Source: Octopus bimaculoides | Lineage: Eukaryota | DNA length: 64,000 nucleotides | Direction: 5' to 3' | Assembly: GCF_001194135.2 (NCBI RefSeq) | Contig: NC_068990.1 | Span: 4,907,603 to 4,971,602 of the forward strand | Shown here: piece after piece, positions 2,885 to 60,930 of the stretch | Numbering within the stretch: the first letter of the stretch is position 1 | How the letters are laid out: each line of letters opens with the position of its first letter | Program-made: the position numbers and the translations under genes | Notes under the pieces: model-generated | Databases searched by the model: none | The model's input: only the letters and a program-made list of their open reading frames with translations | Told to the model about the DNA's origin: nothing

Positions 2885-3218
2885 NNNNNNNNNNNNNNNN
2901 NNNNNNNNNNNNNNNNNNNNNNNNNNNNNNNNNNNNNNNNNNNNNNNNNNNNNNNNNNNNNNNNNNNNNNNNNNNNNNNNNNNNNNNNNNNNNNNNNNNN
3001 NNNNNNNNNNNNNNNNNNNNNNNNNNNNNNNNNNNNNNNNNNNNNNNNNNNNNNNNNNNNNNNNNNNNNNNNNNNNNNNNNNNNNNNNNNNNNNNNNNNN
3101 NNNNNNNNNNNNNNNNNNNNNNNNNNNNNNNNNNNNNNNNNNNNNNNNNNNNNNNNNNNNNNNNNNNNNNNNNNNNNNNNNNNNNNNNNNNNNNNNNNNN
3201 NNNNNNNNNNNNNNNNNN
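2885..3218. other. Assembly gap (N run)
   Basis: N run flanked by (CT)n on the left and a minisatellite on the right. Confidence 1.
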
Positions 3219-3531
3219 TTCTTGCTATGTTCTCATGATGTCTCTTGTCTAATGGACAATCCTTGCTGTATTGTCATGACATCTCTTGTCCAATGGACAA
3301 TCCTTGCAATATTGTCATGATGTTTCTTGTCCAATGGACAATTCTTGCTATGTTCTCATGATGTCTCTTGTCTAATGGACAATCCTTGCTGTATTGTCAT
3401 GACATCTCTTGTCCAATGGACAATCCTTGCTATATTGTCATGATGTTTCTTGTCCAATGGATAATTCTTGCTATATTGTCATGATGTCTCTTGTGCAATG
3501 GACAACCCTTGCTATATTGTCACGACGTCTT
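3219..3531 (+). repeat. 41-bp minisatellite, about 7.6 copies visible, truncated by the gap
   Basis: Units start at 3219, 3260, 3301, 3342, 3383, 3424, 3465 and 3506. Consensus TCCTTGCTATATTGTCATGATGTCTCTTGTCCAATGGACAA. Confidence 0.97.
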
Positions 3532-6689: not shown

Positions 6690-7010
6690 TATATCACCAT
6701 TGTCCCTGCTTTCACGGGTTGGATAGTTTGACCAGAGCTAGCTAGCTGGGGAGCTTCACCAAACTCCAATCTGATTTGGCAGGGTTTCTACAGCTGGATG
6801 CCCTTCCTAATGCCAACCACATTACCAAGTGGACTGGCTGCTTTTACATGGCACCACACAAGTGCTTTTATGTGGTGTTACACGGGCACTTTTGTGTGGC
6901 ATCACAAGGGCACTTTTATGTGACACTGCATGGATGCTTTTGCATGGCACCGCACGATGCTTTTATGTGGTACTGCATGGGCACTTTCATGTGGCTCTGC
7001 CATGAGTGCT
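6690..7010 (-). mobile_element. RTE-tail SINE-like element with an internal 24-bp tandem repeat
   Basis: TTTCTACAGCTGGATGCCCTTCCTAATGCCAACCAC is the reverse complement of the RTE 3' tail at 18845-18885. It is followed by seven ~24-bp units (CTTTTATGTGGCAC...) at 6841-7009. Confidence 0.8.
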
Positions 7011-15797: not shown

Positions 15798-16622
15798 TAC
15801 AACAGTCAGCTAAAAAGTTCATAGACTGGTCTAGATACTCTCGTGGAATGTGACCATAGTCCACCTCGTAGTCCGTAAACTTCTATCAGTGTCGCCACTC
15901 TTGGATCTCATTGGTAAAGAAACTTTCATCCTGTTGGCGTTTCTACTGCACGGATTGTCTCTTTGTCTCTGTCTTAAGTGATGAACTGAACACTCACCCT
16001 GGGGGAGGAAATGTTTAAGGAAACCAGTTGGATCTGCCTTAAACAATGTCAGGTTTTCTTGTGATGTGATGAGCTTGGTGCACTTTTGATCAGGTGTCAG
16101 AAAATGTGGCACCCACCAAGTAAAAACCTTTGTTATGCCAAGTTCATTGTGCAGAATGATCTCAATTGCTTCATGGGATATGCTAATAGATTTGGCTACT
16201 GGATTTAGTCAACTGTCTCTCATCCATCACTATGTGATGAACACACTCAAGGCGATGGCAGTTTCAGGACGTTCAGACCTTGCATCATCATCCCCTTCGA
16301 TATTCAGTTTCCCACTTTTGCACTGTTTTTAAAACTGGTCATCTGCTAATGTAGCTACCATGTCAGCATAAATGTCCTTGGGGGCTAAACTCTTTTTCTG
16401 CAGGCACTCTATAACACCACAATGTCAAATTTTGTCCAGTTTCAAGAGAAGTTGCCACTAGTTACTTTTGAAGTCTTCTTTGAACAGTCAGATGCTAGTT
16501 TACCTGGAAAGAAACAATACAATTATTAATAAGATGAGCTGAAATTAAGGCATGCAAGATTTCACAACTCTAGCATCACTCCTTCGTAGTCAAATAATGA
16601 ACTTTGCAGCCCACTCTTGCAA
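15798..16622 (-). mobile_element. Mariner element, internally deleted, both TIRs present
   Basis: Minus strand reads WVPHFLTPDQKCTKLITSQENL (WVPHEL motif), then jumps to the C-terminal QDESFFTNEIQ..DY. Terminal inverted repeats at 15798-15828 and 16591-16621 match at 21/31 positions by eye. Confidence 0.9.
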
Positions 16623-17831: not shown

Positions 17832-19005
17832 TGTACCCGGTGCAAGCTATGGACACATAAGAGGTGCAGCAACATCAAAGGCAGGTTAACTAGCAAGTTA
17901 GTTTTTGCTTGTGGCAGATGTTCAGGTGCAATAAAGACTGCAAACAAACAGGAAACAACTTCTATCTCATTCCAGGGTGAAAAACTAGAGGTAGTCGATA
18001 GCTTCCGCTATCTGGGCGACCAAGTTAGTAGTGGGGGTGGGTGCGCTGAAAGTGTAGCTGCTAGAATAAGAATAGCCTGGGCAAAGTTTAGAGAGCTCTT
18101 ACCCCTGCTGGCGACAAAGGGACTCTCACTCAGAGTAAAAGGCAGACTGTATGACGCATGCGTACGAACAACCATGCTACATGGCAGTGAAACATGGGCT
18201 GTAACTGCTGAGGACATNNNNNNNNNNNNNNNNNNNNNNNNNNNNNNNNNNNNNNNNNNNNNNNNNNNNNNNNNNNNNNNNNNNNNNNNNNNNNNNNNNN
18301 NNNNNNNNNNNNNNNNNNNNNNNNNNNNNNNNNNNNNNNNNNNNNNNNNNNNNNNNNNNNNNNNNNNNNNNNNNNNNNNNNNNNNNNNNNNNNNNNNNNN
18401 NNNNNNNNNNNNNNNNNNNNNNNNNNNNNNNNNNNNNNNNNNNNNNNNNNNNNNNNNNNNNNNNNNNNNNNNNNNNNNNNNNNNNNNNNNNNNNNNNNNN
18501 NNNNNNNNNNNNNNNNNNNNNNNNNNNNNNNNNNNNNNNNNNNNNNNNNNNNNNNNNNNNNNNNNNNNNNNNNNNNNNNNNNNNNNNNNNNNNNNNNNNN
18601 NNNNNNNNNNNNNNNNNNNNNNNNNNNNNNNNNNNNNNNNNNNNNNNNNNNNNNNNNNNNNNNNNNNNNNNNNNNNNNNNNNNNNNNNNNNNNNNNNNNN
18701 NNNNNNNNNNNNNNNNNNNNNNNNNNNNNNNNNNNNNNNNNNNNNNNNNNNNNNNNNNNNNNNNNNNNNGGCACATAAAAGACACCATTTCGAGCGTGGC
18801 CGTTCTCGTGCGGGTGACACGTAAAAGCACCCACTACACTCTCTGAGTGGTTGGCGTTAGGAAGGGCATCCAGCTGTAGAAACTCTGCCAAATCAGACTG
18901 GAGCCTGGTGTTGCCATCCGGTTTCACCAGTCCTCAGTCAAATCGTCCAACCCATGCTAGCATGGAAAGCGGACGTTAAACGATGATGATGATGATGATG
19001 ATGAT
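17832..19005 (+). mobile_element. 5'-truncated RTE-clade LINE, young, with an internal gap at 18218-18769
   Basis: An open frame at 17832-18217 reads CTRCKLWTHKRCSNIKGRL..CGRC..LEVVDSFRYLGDQ..RIRIAWAKFRELLPLL..YDACVRTTMLHGSETWAVT. The 3' tail ends in (GAT)8. Confidence 0.93.
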
Positions 19006-19599
19006 ATATATATATATATATATATGTACGCACACACACACACACAAAAAGCATTACCAATGATATTGATAGTGTTGGTACAAACATAGACTTATGTTTG
19101 AGATATTTTGCTCATAAATTGTCATCAAGGCAAATTTATCATAATTTAAATAAGTACTAGATCTTTCTGCTTTCTCTCTCTCTCTCTCTCTTACACACAC
19201 ACATACAACACATACACAAACAGACACACACACACACAGAAACATGAATGTAGTATTGGCAACGTTTTTCTGGTGTATACATAAATGTGTTTTCCCAAAT
19301 AAAACTTCACGTCATGTTTGAAACTCTGTACTATGAGTAACATAATTATTTATTCCTTTGTCATTCTAATTTCTTATACACACACACATCAAATAATATT
19401 GAGAGAAGCAGCATTACTTGCTTGCTTTTGCACTGTAAGTCCTTGTGAGAGGTTCTCCCATAGTAAATAGCACAGTATTCACTGTTGTAATACAACGTCC
19501 ACTTTAAGTGGAAGATAAATATTACCCATACATACATGCATACATACATACATACAAACAAATAAACAATATTGAACATGCATACAAAAATTATGTATT

Positions 19600-24466: not shown

Positions 24467-24770
24467 ATCATTGTTTAACGTCTGTCTTCCATGTATGCAT
24501 GGGTAGAATGGTTGACAGATGGCCAGGTAGAAGATTACACCTGGCTACTGTGTCTGTTTTGGCAGGGTTTTTATGGCTGGATGCCGTTCCGAACACCAAT
24601 CGCTCCACAGAGTGGACTGAGTGCTTTTTATGTGGCACCGGCACAGGCGAGGTCAGTTTTGGCATGATTTTTACAGCTGGATGCCCTTCCAAATGCCAAA
24701 CACTTTACAATGTAGACTGGATGTACATAAATCATGGCACCAGCACTGGCAGGGGGGTCACCAAGTAACT
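24467..24770 (-). mobile_element. RTE-tail SINE-like element
   Basis: Reverse complement of the RTE tail, with motifs GGCTGGATGCCGTTCCGAACACCAATCGCTCC and ACAGCTGGATGCCCTTCC (the tail core appears twice). Confidence 0.75.
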
Positions 24771-31925: not shown

Positions 31926-32098
31926 AAAAGCACCCACTACACTCTCGGAGTGGTTGGCGTTAGGAAGGGCATCCAGCTGTAGAAACTCTGCCAAATCAGA
32001 TTGGAGCCTGGTGTAGCCATCTGGTTTGCCAGTCCTCAGTCAAATCGTCCAACCCATGCTAGCATGGAAAGCAGATGTTAAACGATGATGATGATGAT
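31926..32098 (+). mobile_element. Isolated RTE 3'-tail copy
   Basis: Near-identical to the tail at 18824-19005 and ends in (GAT)n. Confidence 0.9.
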
Positions 32099-32137
32099 CA
32101 TCATCATAAAAGTAGGTTATTAATACAGAAAAAATTA

Positions 32138-32350
32138 AGGTGGTGAGCTGGAAGAATCATTAGCATGCCTGGTGAAATTCTTAGTGGCATTTCATCTTTT
32201 ATGTACTGAGTTCAAATTCAGCTAAGGTTGGCTTAACTTGTCACCCTTTCAGGATTGATAAAATAAGTACCAGTTGAGCACTAAGGTAAATGTAATTCAC
32301 TTACCCCTTCCCTTGTACTTGCTGATTTTGTGCCAAAATTTGAAATCATT
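32138..32350 (+). mobile_element. tRNA-derived SINE, second family
   Basis: Head AAGGTGGTGAGCTGG, B-box-like GAGTTCAAATTC, and central CCTTTCAGGATTGATAAAATAAGTACCAG. Paralogous to 49895-50113 and 58925-59140. Confidence 0.8.
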
Positions 32351-37454: not shown

Positions 37455-37662
37455 GTCGCCAGTACCGCCTGACTGGCCCTCATGCCGGTGGCACATAAAA
37501 GCACCCACTACACTCTCGGAGTGGTTGGCGTTAGGAAGGGCATCCAGCTGTAGAAACTCTGCCAGATCAGATTGGAGCCTGGTACAGCCATCTGGCTTGC
37601 CAGTCCTCAGTCAAACCGTCAAACCGTCAAACCCATGCCAGCATGGCTAGTGGACGTTAAAC
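37455..37662 (+). mobile_element. RTE 3'-tail copy
   Basis: Same tail as 18824-18980, including the upstream GCCAGTACCGCCTGACTGGC unit. Confidence 0.88.
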
Positions 37663-37678
37663 AAAACAAACGATATAT

Positions 37679-37714
<36 letters not shown>

Positions 37715-43379: not shown

Positions 43380-44815
43380 TTGAGTGAATGAGAGAAAGGG
43401 AAGTAGAAGTGACAAATGAATTGCTAGGTAACATGAAAATATGCAGGGGCATTTTCCAAGGAGACTTACTTTGCCCATTAATTTTCGTTGTTGCACTAAT
43501 CCCTATGACAAATATACTGAGGAAGTCCTGGCCTGCCTATGAGTTTACCAAAACCAAGATAAGAATAAACCACTTACTTTACGAGGATGACCTCAAGATA
43601 TATGTACAAAAAATGGGACAGACCTGGATTATCAAATCCAAAGAGTGTGAATATTCAGTAAAGACATTGGATCGCAGTTTGGGGTAAAATGCACAATAAA
43701 GGCACAATACTACAATGAAGAGAGGCCAGAAAGTAAAGGCTGATGACATACAATTATCACAAGACAGCATCATTCGATTATTATGCAGTAATCAGGGATA
43801 CAAATACCTTGGGGTACAATAAGATAATGGAAAGAGAAATGAGAGAGAAAGTTACTAAGGAAGTCAAAAGGGGAATTAGGAAGGTACTTCAGACAAAAAT
43901 AAGTGGATGAAAAATCATTAAATCCATAAATATATGGGAAATTCCAGCATTGAGATACTTTGCTCCATTTCTGAAATGGAGAAAAATCAAGCTGCAGAAC
44001 TTAGATAGGAGAACCAGAAAGCTGCTAATGATGCATAACACATTCCATCCTAAAAGTAATACCGACTGACTCTATCTGCCAAGATGGGAAGGTGATACAG
44101 GATTACTAGACACTGAAGAGACTGCTAGAACTGCAATACTGGGTCTGAAAAATTATGCTGTGTAGAGAAAAGAAAGAATACTTTCAGCAGCCAGAGATAC
44201 CCAAAATGTGACTGAAACAGTAGAATTTAAACAGAAAAGAAAGAAGAACAGAATGAACAAATGAAAAGAAATGGAACTGCAAGGCCAATTCATGCAACAA
44301 ACCAAAAATGTTGGAAGTGAAGCCTACTGGCTTTGGTTGACAGACAGGAATTTGAAATGAAAAACAAACATTAATTATAGCTGTTCATGAACAAGCCCTT
44401 AGAACAAATCTGTTAAAGGCAAAGATTGACAAAACTCAGTCAGACATTAAATAAAAAAATCTGCAAGAAAGGAGTGAGTGGAACATACTAGCACAAAAGG
44501 TGTACTGATGCAGACATAACTAAGCAAACAAAGGAGTGCATTGAGATGTTACTCGAGTATGTGGCTTCAAAACAACAGAAACTGATGTGAACATGAACCT
44601 GAGGCTGTGATAGAAAATGAGAATTACAAGATCTTATGGGACTTCACCATAGAAACTGACTATAGGTGCAGGAGTGGCTGTGTGGTAAGTAGTTTGCTTA
44701 CCAACCGCATGGTTCCGAGTTCAGTGCTACTGCATAGCACCTTGGGCAAGTGTTTTTTACTATAGCCTCAGGCCGACCAAAGCCTTGTGAGTGAATTTGG
44801 TAGAAAGAAGCATGT

Positions 44816-44869
<54 letters not shown>

Positions 44870-45450
44870 TGTGTTTGTGTGTCTGCATTTGTTCCCCTCC
44901 ACCATCGCTTGACAACCAATGTCGGTGTGTTTACATCCACAAAACTTAGCAGTTCAGCAAAACACACCAATAGAATGAGTACTAGTCTTACAAAGAATAA
45001 GTCCTGGGGTCAATTTGTTTGACTAAAGGCGATGCTCCAGCATGGCCGTAGTCAAATGACTGAAATAAATAAAAGAAAAGAATACTATTGAGGCAGGATT
45101 AAAGAGGATGAAATAAACAAATGTGCAAGACTATAAATTTTCCAATACCCTATTATAGCAGGGTCAATACCAAAGAAATACCAAATTCTAGCCAGAGAGC
45201 TGAAAAGATCGGAAGACCAAGACAACAATTAACAACAATTATTCTTGTCGTAAAAAGTGTCCTTGGCTCAGTACCCAAAATGCTACCTAAAAGACTGAAT
45301 AAAATTGAAATTGAAACATATTGACAACCTGCACAAAAGTACCATCCTATATTCTGTAAGAATCCTAAGAAAAATTCTTGAGATTTGAGAAGAGTTGTTG
45401 ACACCAGGCCTCAAGATAAAATACCTGCTAAGTAAATTAGCAGGCACTAG
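43380..45450 (+). mobile_element. R4/Dong-like element (copy B): decayed RT plus RLE, interrupted by a SINE
   Basis: RGIFQGDLLCPLIFVVALIP..INHLLYEDDLKIY (43445-43600), then HPKSN..LYLPR.EG..GLL and NYKILWDFTIETD. After the SINE it continues with EKYQILAREL..LGSVPK. Confidence 0.9.
44664..45083 (+). mobile_element. Full-length tRNA-derived SINE with internal (TA)n/(TG)n, inserted in R4 copy B
   Basis: Head GGTGCAGGAGTGGCTGTGTGGTAAG and an A-rich end. Target duplication ACTAT at 44659-44663 and 45084-45088. Confidence 0.9.
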
Positions 45451-45554: not shown

Positions 45555-46215
45555 ATTACTGAAATATGTAATCTTGACAGAAAAATATGAAAATTATCGA
45601 CAATGCATAGAATGCACCACCCTAAGGCAGATATAGAATGATTTTACCTGCCAAGAAAAGAGGGTGGCTGTGGACTTTTACAACTGGAATTAATGAAGAT
45701 TGCCACAATTGGCCTAAACACCTACCTGAAAATCTCTGATGACTGAATATTAAAACGTGTTTTAAAGCATGAAAACAAGAAAGCATCATACTCAGACCAG
45801 ATGTCGGAAACCAGACGTTGTCATGGTGAATAAAAAAGAAAGAACAAGCATAATAATCGAAATAGCATGTCCTGGTGACGACAGGATCAAAGAGAAAGAC
45901 GAAAAACTGAACGACTACGACAATTTGAAGTGGGAAATACGGTGGTTGTGGTCAATGGGGAGAGAAGACGTGGTATCAATAGTAACGGATGCACTTGGAA
46001 GTATCGGCACTCAACTACCAATATGGCTCAAAAAGATTGGTACATATGTAAAGGTAGAACATCTACAAAAGTCAGCATTGCTTGGAACTGCAAGCATTCT
46101 TTGCGGGGTTCTCGAAGCATGACCAGTAAATAAGTTCCACCTAATCTGCTGGCTGTGGCAGCTGACACTTTCCATCACACCCAGCAAAATAAGCTGTGAG
46201 TTTTCATTAAATAAT
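45555..46215 (+). mobile_element. R4/Dong-like element (copy C), internally deleted or chimeric
   Basis: MHRMHHPKADIE*FYLPRKEGGCGLLQLE is fused near 45793 to RKPDVVMVNKKERTSIIIEIACP..LQKSALLGTASIL (PD..E-x-A RLE motif). Confidence 0.9.
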
Positions 46216-49894: not shown

Positions 49895-50113
49895 AAATTT
49901 TTTCTTCTATAGGCACAAAACCTGAAATTTTGAAGGAGGGGACAGTTGGTTACATCAACCCCAATACTTGATCAATACTCTTTTTTATCAACTTTGAAAG
50001 GATGGAAAGTAAAATAGACCATGGTGGTATTTGAACCCAGAACATAAAGCTGGGAGAAATGCTATCAAGCATTTTGTCGGGTGTACTAATGATTCTGTCA
50101 GCTCACTGCCTTA
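49895..50113 (-). mobile_element. tRNA-derived SINE of the 32138 family
   Basis: Reverse complement of the head, the B box (TTTGAACCCAGAAC) and the core (TTTATCAACTTTGAAAGGATG). Confidence 0.78.
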
Positions 50114-52854: not shown

Positions 52855-53520
52855 CGATTGCGCTGGTATGGACATGTGGTGAGAATGGAGGAGGATAGCT
52901 GCGTGAAAAAGTGCCACACCCTAACAGTTGAGGGAACCCGTGGAAGAGGTAGGCCCAGGAAGACCTGGGCTGAGGTGGTGAGGCAAGACCTTCGTACATT
53001 GGGCCTCACCGAGGCGATGACTACGGACCGAGACCTTTGGAAATGGGCTGTGCGTGAGAAGACCCGGCAAGCCAAGTAAGATCGTTGCCAGTGCCCCTGG
53101 ACTGGTTCTTGTGCGGGTGGCACATGAGATGCACCATTTTGAGCGTGGCCGTTGCCAGTACCGCCTGACTGGCTCCTGTAGGATTTTCGAGCGAGATCGT
53201 TGCCAGTGCCCCTGGACTGGCTTNNNNNNNNNNNNNNNNNNNNNNNNNNNNNNNNNNNNNNNNNNNNNNNNNNNNNGGCTTGTGCGGGTGGCACATAAAA
53301 GACACCATTTCGAGCGTGGCCGTTTTCGTGCGGGTGACACGTAAAAGCACCCACTACACTCTCTGAGTGGTTGGCGTTAGGAAGGGCATCCAGCTGTAGA
53401 AACTCTGCCAAATCAGACTGGAGCCTGGTGTTGCCATCCGGTTTCACCAGTCCTCAGTCAAATCGTCCAACCCATGCTAGCATGGAAAGCGGACGTTAAA
53501 CGATGATGATGATGATGATG
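52855..53520 (+). mobile_element. 5'-truncated young RTE LINE (ORF2 C-terminus plus 3' UTR)
   Basis: Intact frame RLRWYGHVVRMEEDSCVKKCHTLTVEGTRGRGRPRKTW..AK* ends at 53079. The 3' UTR has tandem units, a gap at 53224-53276, and a (GAT)n tail. Confidence 0.95.
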
Positions 53521-53627
53521 AATGTTTTATTAATTCTAGTTTTTGGGGATTTTTTTTGCCTTTTTTGTTTTTTAATAAACGCATACAAACATTATGCACT
53601 TATTAAATTTTAGTAGAAATTTAGAAT

Positions 53628-54549
53628 TACAGGGTGTTCTAACTAAATTTGACAATTTTTTTTTTAGGAACAGCTTGATGTATTGGTGAACAGTCAACGG
53701 CATTGGACAGCATCATGATTAAAGTTGTCATTCAGAAATAGTTAGCTGATATGGAGAATTGGAAGCCATCTAAATATTGGAGAAGAGTTACCTATATCAA
53801 GAAAATTTGAGCTGGGTGCCAAAATGTTGACATGACTGCTCAATGCTCTGTAAATACTGTAACAGCTGTAAGACATAATGTGGACAGTTGTAGAGACATT
53901 ATGTAAGACATTATGTGGACAGAGACTACGAAGCCATGGCCAGCAGCAATGGCCACAGCAAGTGTGCTGACTGTATTAAAATTCCTGAAGTCATCCAGCA
54001 ACTTCAGGAACAGAGCCTTAAACTCAACTCAGATGGTTATGTAAAGCTGCTGGAGATTGTGGTCAAACCGTTGCTGGAGAAGGCTGCTAATGCAAGGCAA
54101 TATGTGTGGTAGTAGGATTCAGCTCCTTACCATACTTCCAGAAAGAGTCAGAAATGGTTGTCAGAGAATTTCTATGACTTCATCAGCCCCAATTTCTGGC
54201 CTCCTAATTCCCTTGGTTATAATCTTATGAACTATTATGCATGGGGCATGGTTGAGAAATACACCAACCTCTCTGCCTGTAACACCAAGGCTGAGCTGGC
54301 AGCCAAGATCAAGGAAGTGTTCAAAGATCTTCCCAGGGACACAGAGAGAGTAATGCTTGCATCAGCTTCTGTAGCTGACTAGCTGACTTGAAGCCATGGT
54401 GGAAGCTGAGGGTAGCTACTTTGAGTAAACTGTTATCTTCCACTCATAGTTGATAGTCTTTTTCTTTTAAATACTTTTGTTTTGGGATGGGATGTTGTGT
54501 TTTCTTTTCCTTTTACACAAACTCTCAAATCTGTCCTGAGCACCTTGTA
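53628..54549 (+). mobile_element. Tc1/mariner DD37D (maT-type) element, internally deleted
   Basis: TA-bounded TIRs match at 17/26 positions. YVW**DSAPYHTS..WPPNSLGYNLMNYYAWG has 37 residues between the second D and the third catalytic position (now N). Confidence 0.88.
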
Positions 54550-56838: not shown

Positions 56839-58077
56839 TTACTGAAATAGGTTTCTTCCCCTAAGAGTAACCTTAGAGACTAGTTCTATACTTTATATAA
56901 ATACTATATTTAAATATAACTAAATCTTCATGATTTTTCTTCGCTTTTATCCTGCTGCTTTGATTCATATGTAAAACCAAGCTATTGGCATCTTTTGAAG
57001 TCACACTGGCACCTTATACAATTGGTGAGGATAATGGCAATTTCAGTTGTCCAACAAAGGGACATTATGGACAATCTTTTAGAAGTGTGGAGCTATAAAA
57101 AATGGTTAAGAACACCTACTGTGTTTTAAACTTCCGTAATTTCAATGTAATTATTGAAGCAATTCATTTATATGTTTGTAAAGATAGTTATTTGTAGTTT
57201 AGATTTATATAAGATGCATCTCTTTCTTTCTCACTCTCTCTATCATTCTCCCTCTCATTCTCTCTCATGATGAATTCTTAAACAAATCAATTTTACGCTG
57301 TTAATTGAATTCCTGCATGAAGGAAATGCCTCCATAATCATTCACTTAGAATGGCCGAATTCACTATTCTTCTCCATTCCTTCTCTTGTGAATGATAATT
57401 GCATAAATGATATTAATCCTACACAACAGAAGTACTTCATTCATAGTAATACACACAGAGATTGCATAATAAGATTGTATAAGTAAAGTGAAATAAAAAG
57501 TAGATTTATAACTTATAAACTAGAAAGTGATAAAACTATAAATTGTGTCCAACATTTTTAACACAAGCAGCATAAAGAATAGATACTAAATTATTATGCC
57601 AATCATATTTATAAAAATGTTATATCAAAATTTGAAAATGGATTTGTAACATTTTGTTTGAAGAGGGAAAAAAGAAAGAAATACTCAACTGAATCAAGCC
57701 AAGTATCATACTGATACGTACTTCGAAGACCCAGGAAAAATTCTTTTCAAAAATTGACCCAATAGAATTTGAAACTGAATGTTATAATGATATATTATAA
57801 AATTGATTTAAAAAAAAACATAAAGTATCAGATAAGTGTAATATTTTAATTAGTATAAAATTTCTCTCTTTAACATTTCATAGCAATGAATACTTATTAA
57901 TGACTTCAAATTATCTTCTGGTATTATTTAAGAATGTATTTGGCATTTCCTAGTGCAATATATTTATACATACATACACATAAATATATGTTCTCAGTAA
58001 AAATTTAGCGACACAACAGACTGTAAAAGGGCAAGACAAATGAAAAAATACTAAATAAAAAAAAAATTTAAAAAAAA

Positions 58078-58300
58078 CGATTAACCTACGTACCATGGTT
58101 TCACCTGTTAAAATTTACATAAGTAAATATCTGCAGGATTGTCAGCGTAGTCTGTCGATTTGCGATGTAATTTCCAGAACTAGACACAGGACGTCCAACC
58201 GAAAGGGAGCACGTGTAGAGGTCTACAAATTACATTCAGTGTATCCTTTCAAATGTCTTCAATCTGGCGCGCTAAGTCCGGAAATAATTCTGCAGTTAAT
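58078..58300. promoter_or_regulatory. CpG-retaining patch, candidate promoter or first exon
   Basis: 11 CpG in about 203 bp, an E-box CACGTG and GCGCGC. No TE hallmark recognised. Confidence 0.3.
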
Positions 58301-58431
58301 AAATTTTTGCAGCTAATTTACTGGTTTGAGAACATTATTGTATAAAAATTTATTTATGAAGCTAGAAATTGATATTAATCAATTTGAACCAGTGGTCTAG
58401 CATATTAAAAAAAAATCCGAAGATTAAAATT

Positions 58432-58627
58432 ATATTACATACAAAAATAAGAGGAATGACCAGCAAAAGTGGACTCCTATATGCTAGAAATAGATGCCGA
58501 ATCATCTAACCACGAAAAGTTTTACTGAGAACATATATCTTTTTCGTGGTTAGATGATTCGGCATCTATTTCTAGCATATAAGAGTCCACTTTTGCTGGT
58601 CATTCCTCTTATTTTTGTATGTAATAT
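58432..58627. repeat. 87-bp-arm palindrome with 1 mismatch and a 22-nt spacer
   Basis: 58432-58518 is the reverse complement of 58541-58627 except C58477/A58582. Confidence 0.97.
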
Positions 58628-58642
58628 GCTTAGAGAAGAATA

Positions 58643-58855
58643 TACAAGGCAGTACTGAAAAGTTCCTGGTTTTGGGTAAAAGAAAGGATCAGTTAATTAT
58701 GATTTTATTCAACATATTCCTCTCTCTGATTCACACACTTATTGCAGCGGTCCTTTAGTTTTTCTAAGCCCTGTAAAAGAACTTGGAAGGTTGGGCCTCT
58801 AACCAGGCCTTTCGCTACACTCTTAAAACCAGGAACTTTTCAGTCCCCTCTTGTA
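58643..58855. mobile_element. Mariner-type MITE (~210 bp)
   Basis: TIRs TACAAG-GCAGT/AGGGG-ACTGAAAAGTTCCTGGTTTT at both ends, TA-bounded, with no coding capacity. Confidence 0.92.
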
Positions 58856-58924
58856 TATTCACATGCCTATACTTATACGCATATTTAAAGACTGTGTAAA
58901 TACATGTATTAATATATAACACAC

Positions 58925-59140
58925 TTATGGGCAGTAGATTGTTAGAATTGTTAGGGCACCAAATAAAAAGATTTACAGCTTTTAGTTACAAAATTTTATG
59001 TTCTGCATTCAAATCCTGCCATAGTCAACTTTGACTTTCATTCTTCCAGATTAGTAAAATAAAGTACCATTCAAGGGTACTTTATTTTACTAGCAATTGT
59101 ATCCATCCCCCAAATTTAAGGCTTATGCCTATATTAGAAA
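58925..59140 (+). mobile_element. Decayed SINE of the 32138 family
   Basis: TTCAAATCCTGCCATAGTCAACTTTGACTTTCAT..TAAAATAAAGTACC..CCCCCAAATTT..GCCTATATTAGAAA. Confidence 0.72.
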
Positions 59141-60073
59141 TCTGATTCTAAATAAAGTATTTAGCTTCCTTCTGGAGAAATTTCAGTAATCCATTCCACC
59201 ATAGATTGTAAAAATTGGCAAATTTCAACACTGCTGCAATTATCAGAATTCCTAAATTTAAAGAGAGAGCAAAGTTGAAAACTATTAACTGTAAAATGTG
59301 TAGATGGTTCTAAATAATTAATTAAATCCTGCCATGGATAATTTAAGTATGTAAGTCTGGAGAAATTTCAGAAATTCTTGATTATCTGAAAGAGTATAAA
59401 ATTCTGAAATTTGAAGTGGTAACAAGGTTAAAAACTATTGACTCTAAATATGCAAATAATCTTAATTAAAGAAAGACCCAACTGTATAGGTGGAGGATTT
59501 GGGAAATTTCAGAAAATCTACTCGATCTGAAATTCATGGAATGCTGCTGATATCCCAAATTTTATGCAAGAATAAAGTTTAAATCTATCAATTCTAGAAT
59601 ATGCAAATGGATTTTAAATAAAGAATTAATGTATACCCCAGCTGATTTATTTGTGTAATACTGGAGATAATACAGAAAATTGAGCTTATCTGAAAATCTT
59701 GCAATTATTAACAAGATTGCTTACAACAGACTTCATAAATTTGAAGAGACAACAAATGATTGCAGCAATTAAAGGCAAAAATTTAGTATTTTAAAATGTG
59801 CAAATGGTCATAAATTAAGAATTAATGCTTTCAAAGTTCAACAGGTGAGGAATCACCGGAGTTTTTAAATTTAAAAATTACTAATTCCAAAATGTGCAGA
59901 TGACCTTAAATAAAGAATTCAAAATTTCCTTGGTTGATCTATATATTTGTTATGAAATTTCATCAATTCTGCACTAAGAGAAAAATGATGATTATCAGAA
60001 TTCCTAAATTTGAAGCAAAGCATGTTTGAAAATTATCAAATCAAAACTTTGATTAAATCAAATCTTTGCCAAG

Positions 60074-60930
60074 CTAGCATGTGGTAAAAAGCTTGCTTTC
60101 CAACCACATGGTTCTGGATTCAGTCCAACTGTGTGGTACCTTAGGCAAATGTCTTCTACTATAGCATTGGGCCAACCAAAGCCTTGTGAGTGGATATGGT
60201 AGACAGAAACTGGAAGCAGCTGTCTTTTTTTTTTTTTTAGTCGAATAAATCAACCCCCAGGACTTGTTCTTTGTGGGCCTTGTGCTTATTCTGTCGGTCT
60301 CTTTTGTTGAACCCCTAAGTTGTGGGGATGTAAACACAGCAACATCGGTTGTCAGGCGATGGTGGCGGGGACAAACACAGACACGCAAACACACACACAC
60401 ATATATATGTCAGTGGCATGTTAAAAGCACCATTCGAGTGTGATCATGGCCAGTGCCACCTGACTGGCTCCTGTGCTGGTGACATATAAAAAGCAACATT
60501 CAACCAGCTGACTGGCCCCATACCAGTGGCATGTAAAAAGCACCAACTACACACTCGGAGTGGTTGGCGTTAGGAAAGTCACTCAGCTGTAGATTGGAGC
60601 CTGGTGCAGTCTTTTGGCTTGCCAGCCCTCAGTCAAACTGTCCAACCCATGCCAGCATGGAAAGCGGACGTTAAACTATGATGATTATGATGAGGATGTA
60701 TACATTTATGCATGTCTTTGTGTCTGTGTTTGTCCCCTCCACCATCCCTTGAAAACCAATGTTGATGAATTTAGATTCCCATAACTTAGCAGTTTGGCAA
60801 AAGAGACTGATAGAACAAGCTTACAAAGATTAAGTCCTGGGGTTGATTTCTTCGACTAAAAAAAACTTTAAAGGTGGTGCTCCTGCATGTCCTCAGTCAA
60901 ATGATTGAAACGAGTGAAAGAATAAAGGAA
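60074..60930 (+). mobile_element. Nested SINE cluster inside the array
   Basis: Plus-strand SINE head at 60074-60225 and its tail at 60700-60930. Between them lie a minus-strand SINE 3' half (60240-60405) and an RTE-tail copy (60410-60698). Confidence 0.82.

Follow-up and report, generated by a model that had tools for sequence, protein, structure and literature searches.

We analyzed a 64,000-nucleotide (nt) stretch of the Octopus bimaculoides genome (NCBI RefSeq assembly GCF_001194135.2, contig NC_068990.1, positions 4,907,603 to 4,971,602 of the forward strand), referred to below as the window and numbered from its first letter. Toward its right end lies a long, almost perfect palindrome. 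The window as a whole is 31.6% GC, has a CpG observed/expected ratio (o/e) of 0.26 and contains six gaps of N, consistent with an AT-rich animal genome that is depleted in CpG and was scaffolded from short reads. The palindrome and the sequences related to it are the following:

57982-58006, plus strand: upstream donor or partner of the palindrome's loop; 57984-58002 matches exactly, and TTT at 58004-58006 could serve AAA at 58516-58518 as a priming microhomology
58396-58407, plus strand: outer block TCTAGCATATTA, mirrored by 58622-58634 with one 1-nt insertion or deletion (indel)
58408-58431, plus strand: left-only block of 24 nt, unique in the window, between ATATTA repeats at 58402-58407 and 58432-58437
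58432-58518, plus strand: left arm, the presumed template, containing 2 CpG
58519-58540, plus strand: spacer of 22 nt with its core at 58520-58538; G58519 and C58539 can pair
58541-58627, plus strand: right arm, the presumed copy, matching the reverse complement of the left arm at 86/87 positions, with A58582 where G is expected
58628-58634, plus strand: GCTTAGA, where the copied block ends on the outside; equals TCTAGC (58396-58401) in reverse complement, plus one extra T

A repeat finder delimited a palindrome of 196 bp whose two 87-nt arms, 58432-58518 and 58541-58627, are 99% complementary and separated by 22 nt. The sole mismatch between the arms, C58477 versus A58582, is a C·A opposition on the plus strand and a G·U pair in a minus-strand transcript. 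The predicted fold of the minus-strand RNA is accordingly an uninterrupted stem of -156.3 kcal/mol (z = -23 relative to 200 dinucleotide shuffles), while the plus-strand DNA is predicted to form a stem with one internal mismatch (-101 kcal/mol, z = -24). When a 1-nt homopolymer indel is allowed (A4 at 58515-58518 versus T5 at 58540-58544), G58519 and C58539 pair as well, and the unpaired loop is then exactly the 19-nt core of the spacer.

To the outside, the palindrome ends abruptly. Gapped alignment of the flanks past the outermost mirrored block gave an inverted-similarity score of 11 compared to a null mean of 12.4. The outer ends are therefore sharp, and we ruled out a decayed remnant of a larger or older palindrome. 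Among the inverted repeats of the window this is the only long, near-perfect one; there are also 7 short palindromes with arms of at least 14 nt, where Markov controls had ~0.4. No further copy of the arm was found within the 64-kb window. An exact scan of metagenome and prokaryote collections with a 24-mer from the arm gave 0 matches, which carries little weight because these collections hold no animal genomes.

The spacer has a partner of its own upstream. Its core at 58520-58538 (TTTTACTGAGAACATATAT) is the reverse complement of 57984-58002 at 19/19 positions. Searched at its whole length of 22 nt, the spacer had one other match in the window, on the minus strand at 57982-58003 with 2 mismatches, where 0.01 were expected. 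The analytic chance expectation for the 19-mer within 1 kb on either side is ~3e-7, and the longest loop match seen in 3000 Markov simulations was 15 nt. The homology stretches further, to 23 of 25 nt between 57982-58006 and 58516-58540, and thereby runs into the arm. Inspection ruled out 57984-58002 as part of a second copy of the element, as its flanks are unlike the arms and the window holds no second arm copy.

A shorter mirror lies beyond the arms. The 9-mer AGCATATTA occurs at 58399 and its reverse complement at 58622, and between the arm and this mirror on the left is the 24-nt block 58408-58431, flanked by the ATATTA direct repeats at 58402 and 58432. With one 1-nt indel the mirror grows to 12 nt (TCTAGCATATTA at 58396-58407 versus TCTAAGCATATTA, the reverse complement of 58622-58634). 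By simulation, and post hoc, the probability of such a mirror per 300 nt was ~0.0013 in the indel form and 0.005 for the exact 9-mer. The 24-nt block was either skipped in copying, later lost from the right arm or later inserted on the left; a search for a templated source found no other match to it within the window.

Chance alone would hardly give any of these three: the pair of arms, the exact 19-mer or the outer mirror of 12 nt, each of which far exceeds what is expected at random. These results agree with an earlier description made by a model from the letters alone (the sequence-only reading). It had reported arms that differ at one base, a difference that would be G-U in a minus-strand transcript, together with a spacer core exactly complementary, in reverse, to 57984-58002. 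It had also noticed the mirrored TAATATGCT past the right arm, skipping a ~24-nt block bounded by ATATTA, and this mirror proved to be longer than described once the indel was allowed.

Three upstream pieces of the same strand, each copied as its reverse complement, can account for the entire right-hand block of 115 nt (58520-58634):

58520-58538: reverse complement of 57984-58002, 19/19
58541-58627: reverse complement of 58432-58518, 86/87
58622-58634: reverse complement of 58396-58407, 12 nt plus one extra T

All of the right-hand segments are thus copies of upstream plus-strand DNA, and their junctions carry short microhomologies. Pairing is possible between AAA (58516-58518) and TTT (58004-58006), and a 2-nt microhomology consists of AG (58518-58519) and its reverse complement CT (58539-58540). 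The skip occurs at ATATTA, the 6-nt direct repeat at 58402 and 58432, and the common TAATAT/ATATTA permits the copy to pass over 30 nt. To the right, the copied block stops 3 nt short of an inverted-repeat unit at 58638-58860.

Over ~140 nt, the copies depart from their templates by one G-to-A change, by two +1 T slippages and, where the loop copy has its edges, by one or two mismatches. One extra T of the right arm sits in the T-run beside the loop, and both CpGs of that arm are kept, so that none of the 4 arm CpGs has been lost, against a genomic CpG o/e of 0.26. The slippages and substitutions fit low-fidelity synthesis or a short age. So small a number of differences is compatible with a recent origin, as is the survival of all four CpGs in the arms. 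Arm divergence is 1/87 (95% confidence interval 0.03-6.4%), and an octopus transposable-element clock equates a Jukes-Cantor distance of 0.09 with ~25 million years (My) (PMC13282606). If the arm difference is a later mutation, if this clock holds and if there was no arm-to-arm conversion, the palindrome would be ~1.6 My old (0.04-8.9 My).

The junctions and arm differences also bear on whether the palindrome is real. It could have arisen as an assembly or library artefact, either as an in vitro fold-back chimera or through an error in gap closing or graph traversal. The window is, after all, a gapped scaffold of the short-read style (6 N runs of 10-713 nt), and palindromes are hard to sequence and to assemble. 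However, at least 10.7 kb around the locus are free of gaps, the nearest N run (53224-53276) being 5.1 kb away, and the palindrome is internal, with unique sequence after it. With one substitution and one indel between them, the arms are not a plain reuse of identical k-mers, and the junction overlaps of 2-6 nt are far under the k or overlap length of any assembler. A chimera formed in vitro would, moreover, need to dominate the coverage of the locus. We consider an artefact very unlikely.

We think it probable, with some reserve, that the palindrome is a genuine, young, local inverted duplication which arose at a stalled fork or a double-strand break, through repeated rounds of snap-back (template-switch) synthesis. 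The most economical reading, and the most likely, is that one 3' end snapped back repeatedly, which would give all three pieces the same strand, the same side and the same inverted orientation. Because the loop and the outer 12-nt block also copy nearby upstream DNA, the locus looks like a local inverted duplication and not like a dispersed element; a miniature inverted-repeat transposable element arriving from elsewhere would not explain these copies.

In this model, the plus-strand 3' end ...CGAAAAG, ending at 58519, would first fold onto its own resected strand ~515 nt upstream, with AAA placed on TTT at 58004-58006. Copying of ~19-21 nt there (57982/4-58002) would produce the future loop. 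The end would then dissociate, snap back with CT on AG at 58518-58519 and copy from 58518 to 58432, after which it would jump between the two ATATTA repeats and go on to copy from 58407 to 58396. Finally, the new strand would be joined to the other break end at ~58635, beside the inverted-repeat unit 58638-58860. The outcome would be an insertion of 115 nt (58520-58634) that turned unique DNA into a hairpin with an 87-nt stem and a loop of 19-22 nt. The allele before the event would have read ...CCACGAAAAG and then directly GAAGAATATAC. The order of the steps, the singleness of the event, the polymerase and the position of the break are inferred.

Several points weigh against this model. The first snap-back has to span ~515 nt and total synthesis has to reach ~115-140 nt, and the microhomologies, being 2-3 nt long and A/T-rich, are individually expected by chance. 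The polarity and the pre-event sequence, like the single event, are presumed. The single-copy status of the palindrome holds for the 64-kb window. In addition, the 23/25-nt loop homology that runs into the arm equally well suits an older, pre-existing inverted repeat. The loop 19-mer may therefore belong to the same event as the arms, may be a later insertion at the palindrome center or may be one arm of such an older repeat.

Two further origins were considered and dropped. A circular or tandem intermediate, in which 58519 is joined to 57984 so that the template of arm plus loop is contiguous, was set aside as less economical than snap-back. A parvovirus-like or Helitron-like terminal hairpin was discarded, as no coding sequence accompanies the palindrome and its loop comes from the neighborhood.

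It could also be speculated that the locus is a palindromic miniature inverted-repeat transposable element (MITE) or foldback element of ~186-239 bp, composed almost entirely of two terminal inverted repeats around a short loop, that had entered an AT-rich site at a TA. In that case the arms would be nearly identical on account of a family consensus, which says nothing of when a local duplication occurred. In size and architecture the palindrome is typical of such elements, and terminal inverted repeats are present, albeit trivially, as the whole unit is two inverted arms. Transposable elements abound in this genome (the window has a SINE family, fragments of LINE reverse transcriptase and one DDE-like fragment), O. 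vulgaris is reported to have recently active Tc1-Mariner and MITE families (PMC13282606), and approximately palindromic repeats that form double-stranded RNA (dsRNA) are known, for example the frog Harbinger repeat (PMC5625713). The ends, ATAT/TA ... TA/ATAT with slashes at the boundaries, are compatible with a TA target-site duplication; however, this TA/ATAT "duplication" is self-complementary and therefore uninformative, as a TA duplication and an extension of the palindrome would look alike. A MITE also leaves unexplained the exact 19-nt loop match 520 bp upstream (~3e-7), where the flanks are unlike the arms, and no second copy exists in 64 kb. We regard this explanation as unlikely.

Two features flank the palindrome, one on each side:

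58009-58279, no strand assigned: CpG-retaining patch, o/e ~1.2 at 37% GC, starting 3 nt past the upstream donor of the loop
58638-58860, no strand assigned: panhandle unit of 223 bp, with 36-nt terminal inverted repeats that are 89% complementary and a 151-nt interior (fold z = -4.9)

On the left, the unit 57984-58540 contains 15 CpG (12 of them between 58009 and 58279) and has an o/e of 1.06, compared to 0.27 and 0.16 in its flanks (Fisher p = 2e-5). The patch at 58009-58279 has no Rfam family, no Pfam family and no real protein homologue. A 26-mer from it had 0 exact matches in metagenome and viral collections, again of little weight as these are without animal genomes. Elsewhere in the sequence, CpG-rich 271-bp windows fall on young copies of transposable elements, so that the patch too may be a young insertion and not a promoter, or else an unmethylated region.

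In another possible reading, the present loop is not a copy. A discrete, young, CpG-rich unit bounded by inverted repeats, such as a non-autonomous element with terminal inverted repeats, would already have existed at 57982-58540, with the present loop as its native right terminus. A break at that terminus would have folded once on AG/CT and copied from 58518 to 58396, so that only the right arm is new and no templated filler is required. The earlier allele would have retained the native loop, reading ...CCACGAAAAGTTTTACTGAGAACATATATCT and then GAAGAAT, also ...CGAAAAGTTTTACTGAGAACATATATCT directly before GAAGAATATAC. Consistent with this are the 23/25-nt loop homology running into the arm and the CpG-rich unit, whose start coincides exactly with the left repeat (58009 is its first CpG, and the one before that lies at 57724), as well as the young transposable elements that make up CpG-rich patches elsewhere in the window. 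In the yeast fold-back model, too, the loop is native DNA between two inverted microhomologies (PMC11724301), and a single fold-back needs fewer switches than the multi-step model. On the other hand, it leaves as coincidence that the palindrome closes exactly on both edges of the 19-mer (G58519/C58539). CpG density drops well before the right end of the unit, and there is neither a demonstrable target-site duplication nor a second copy of the putative termini in the window. A single fold-back at an existing unit is, in our judgment, rather improbable.

The sequence-only reading had also made broader claims about the locus. A recent origin is supported by the few differences between copy and template and by the retained arm CpGs, and a CpG-retaining patch does lie next to the palindrome (unit o/e 1.06, p = 2e-5). 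Its central claim, a multi-step template switch and not an ordinary MITE, holds in part. The local inverted duplication with a templated loop, the microhomologies and the absence of a second copy in the window speak for it; this support does not extend to a single event, to any one of polymerase theta, MMBIR or a replicative switch as the agent, or to a non-MITE status genome-wide.

On the right, the panhandle unit, which begins 3-10 bp from the palindrome block, occurs once in the window and lacks a clear target-site duplication; it might be a marker of the break site, a MITE-like element or an older inverted duplication.

Template switching is evident a short distance further on. At 59052-59092, 430 bp from the main palindrome, is a palindrome with 20-nt arms and a 1-nt spacer inside a decayed copy of a SINE-like element. 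Two paralogues of this copy, one on the minus strand (49895-50060) and one on the plus strand (32188-32340), read TATTGGGGTTGATGTAA and CACTAAGGTAAATGTAA in the alignment at the place where the local copy reads GGTACTTTATTTTACTA (59076-59092). The latter 17 nt are the exact reverse complement of the adjacent 59052-59068 and of the same length. This is a textbook in-place template-switch replacement, independent of the main palindrome, and a template-switch process has therefore operated in this stretch of the genome. Together with the excess of short palindromes, it counts in favor of the snap-back reading of the main locus.

Whatever its mutational origin, the palindrome could be a functional hairpin-RNA gene under selection, that is, a source of hairpin RNA or endogenous small interfering RNA (endo-siRNA), a microRNA (miRNA)-like precursor or a selected ADAR target. 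Its predicted stability is extreme on either strand, the sole arm difference is G·U-compatible on the minus strand, and the CpG-retaining and possibly unmethylated patch ~150 bp upstream could serve as a promoter. There is also a precedent in primates, where hairpins born by template switching became miRNAs (PMC10710096). However, the palindrome matches no Rfam family at threshold, a perfect 87-bp stem is far from the ~35-bp imperfect design of miRNAs (PMC10710096), and one G·U-compatible change is not evidence of covariation. We judge such a gene highly improbable.

Searches for RNA families and coding sequence gave little else. At the gathering score, Rfam had no match anywhere in the window, and a permissive search of 57000-60000 returned only generic miRNA hairpins below threshold, the best being MIR159 with 39.6 bits where gathering requires 74. 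No tRNAs were found in the window, and the arm of the palindrome gave no coding signal. The open reading frame (ORF) at 58059-58313, a stop-free frame of 85 codons in the CpG patch, has no Pfam match. Its only match in an exhaustive HMMER search of 1.84 billion representatives, P0007, was rejected as spurious because that match is a translated tandem repeat, in which eight weak repeats with 11/34 identity apiece inflate the E-value. Exact-protein look-ups of three ORFs of the window found nothing on record.

The palindrome itself implies no function; if it is transcribed, the hairpin would be a long dsRNA. The earlier suggestion that it could feed endo-siRNA production or ADAR editing is speculative but reasonable in principle. 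Hyper-editing tracks long, near-perfect dsRNA, and loci of this kind are reported to be unusually dense in octopus (PMC5625713), so one more hairpin there is unremarkable. A more ambitious proposal, and a very doubtful one, is that this is a newborn hairpin-RNA locus which arose in a single mutational step, is transcribed from the CpG patch and might already be a source of endo-siRNA or a hyper-edited ADAR substrate. If that were true, it would be a snapshot of the de novo birth of a hairpin gene by multi-step snap-back, in a lineage that edits its RNA heavily.

Other repeats are scattered through the window, the most numerous being a SINE-like (short interspersed nuclear element-like) family, ~230 bp long and with a tail of (GAT)n, of which the window has seven copies (80-99.6% identity):

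6757-6855: SINE-like copy
18770-19025: SINE-like copy
24658-24720: SINE-like copy
31926-32108: SINE-like copy
37479-37704: SINE-like copy
53290-53525: SINE-like copy
60508-60709: SINE-like copy
43388-43684: decayed transposable-element coding fragment
45766-46119: decayed transposable-element coding fragment
54116-54379: decayed transposable-element coding fragment
15834-16208: decayed transposable-element coding fragment

Two SINE-like copies are nearly identical (18770-19001 and 53290-53521), and both adjoin N gaps, which suggests that the assembly breaks at young repeats. We presume that the consensus of this family resembles abundant octopus repeats. The decayed coding fragments include one reverse-transcriptase piece with a weak RVT_1 match (E = 4e-4) and one DDE_3-like transposase piece (E = 0.017), together with two ORFs without a family match. 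Relatives of the reverse-transcriptase piece occur at 46-69% identity in public assemblies, one of them in GCA_024449705.1.

Several direct-repeat families with spacings of 141-185 nt (AATTCCTAAATTTAAAG..., GAAATTTCAGAAATTC...) occur at 59171-59598. They may be what is left of a tandem array of ~150-bp units, and received no score from Tandem Repeats Finder. An inverted pair at 60231-60408 and 60696-60865 (~170 bp, 77-80% identity, 287 nt apart) occupies the GC-richest part of the window and has a relative at 44681-45027. It is a potential dsRNA-forming pair of the ordinary kind made of two repeat copies. Far to the left, directly after the N gap 2885-3218, is a tandem array at 3219-3530 with a period of ~41 nt or a multiple thereof (self-matches offset by 41-246 nt, up to 94.7% identity).

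The palindrome can be compared with four kinds of known event or element. Template-switch mutations (TSMs), described by Löytynoja and co-workers (PMC10710096, PMC8794818), likewise consist of the reverse complement of adjacent sequence, pair perfectly at once and can arise without a prior repeat; they create perfect hairpins (PMC10710096). At the octopus locus, too, the new sequence is the reverse complement of nearby DNA (86/87, 19/19, and 12/13 with one indel). Published TSMs are mostly tens of nucleotides long (28 and up to 83 nt in the cited examples, with stems of 30-55 nt considered) and involve one switch and one return, often as an in-place replacement. In contrast, the palindrome has a copy of 87-124 nt, a net insertion, a second donor ~520 nt away and a 30-nt skip.

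Snap-back end joining of the synthesis-dependent, microhomology-mediated kind (SD-MMEJ), or polymerase-theta end joining (PMC2943611, PMC5728401, PMC4912351), similarly leaves inverted filler taken from flanking DNA. There, a 3' end folds on its own strand at inverted primer repeats of 1-4 nt, with error-prone synthesis and repeated re-annealing. As a rule the primer repeats lie no more than ~30 bp from the break, and most inserts are <30 nt (PMC5728401), whereas here the farther template is ~515 nt away and 115 nt were inserted. The palindrome fits snap-back or template-switch repair in the way it works, but because of this difference in scale it is not a canonical product of SD-MMEJ or polymerase theta.

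Fold-back inversions at yeast breaks are also inverted duplications, of 2 to ~150 bp, beside the break, and complex insertions there often join two fragments from one locus (PMC11724301). The octopus case differs in that the loop is an inverted copy of distant DNA and not native, and in that it is a germline-fixed event in an animal and not the product of an induced break.

Palindromic MITEs, of which human MADE1/mir-548 is an example, and approximately palindromic repeats, such as the frog Harbinger-derived repeat (PMC5625713), are alike in size (~80-250 bp), in consisting almost entirely of two inverted arms and in their AT-rich ends. Elements of these kinds give long dsRNA when transcribed, which is hyper-edited or processed to small RNAs. 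Unlike these elements, the palindrome has no other copy in 64 kb, takes its loop from neighboring DNA and shows no unambiguous target-site duplication.

If the palindrome is confirmed as a single-copy derived allele, it would be a germline case, at nucleotide resolution, of a multi-step snap-back with three templated pieces, readable junctions and polymerase-type errors. It would show a route by which long, perfect hairpins, the raw material of small-RNA genes and ADAR substrates, can arise at once from unique DNA. It would add a case from outside the vertebrates to the literature on template switching and hairpin birth but opens no new question, the mechanisms being established. In its kind, the palindrome is probably an inverted duplication by template switching or fold-back; its multiple donors, long range and long synthesis make it a good specimen of a known category and not a new one.

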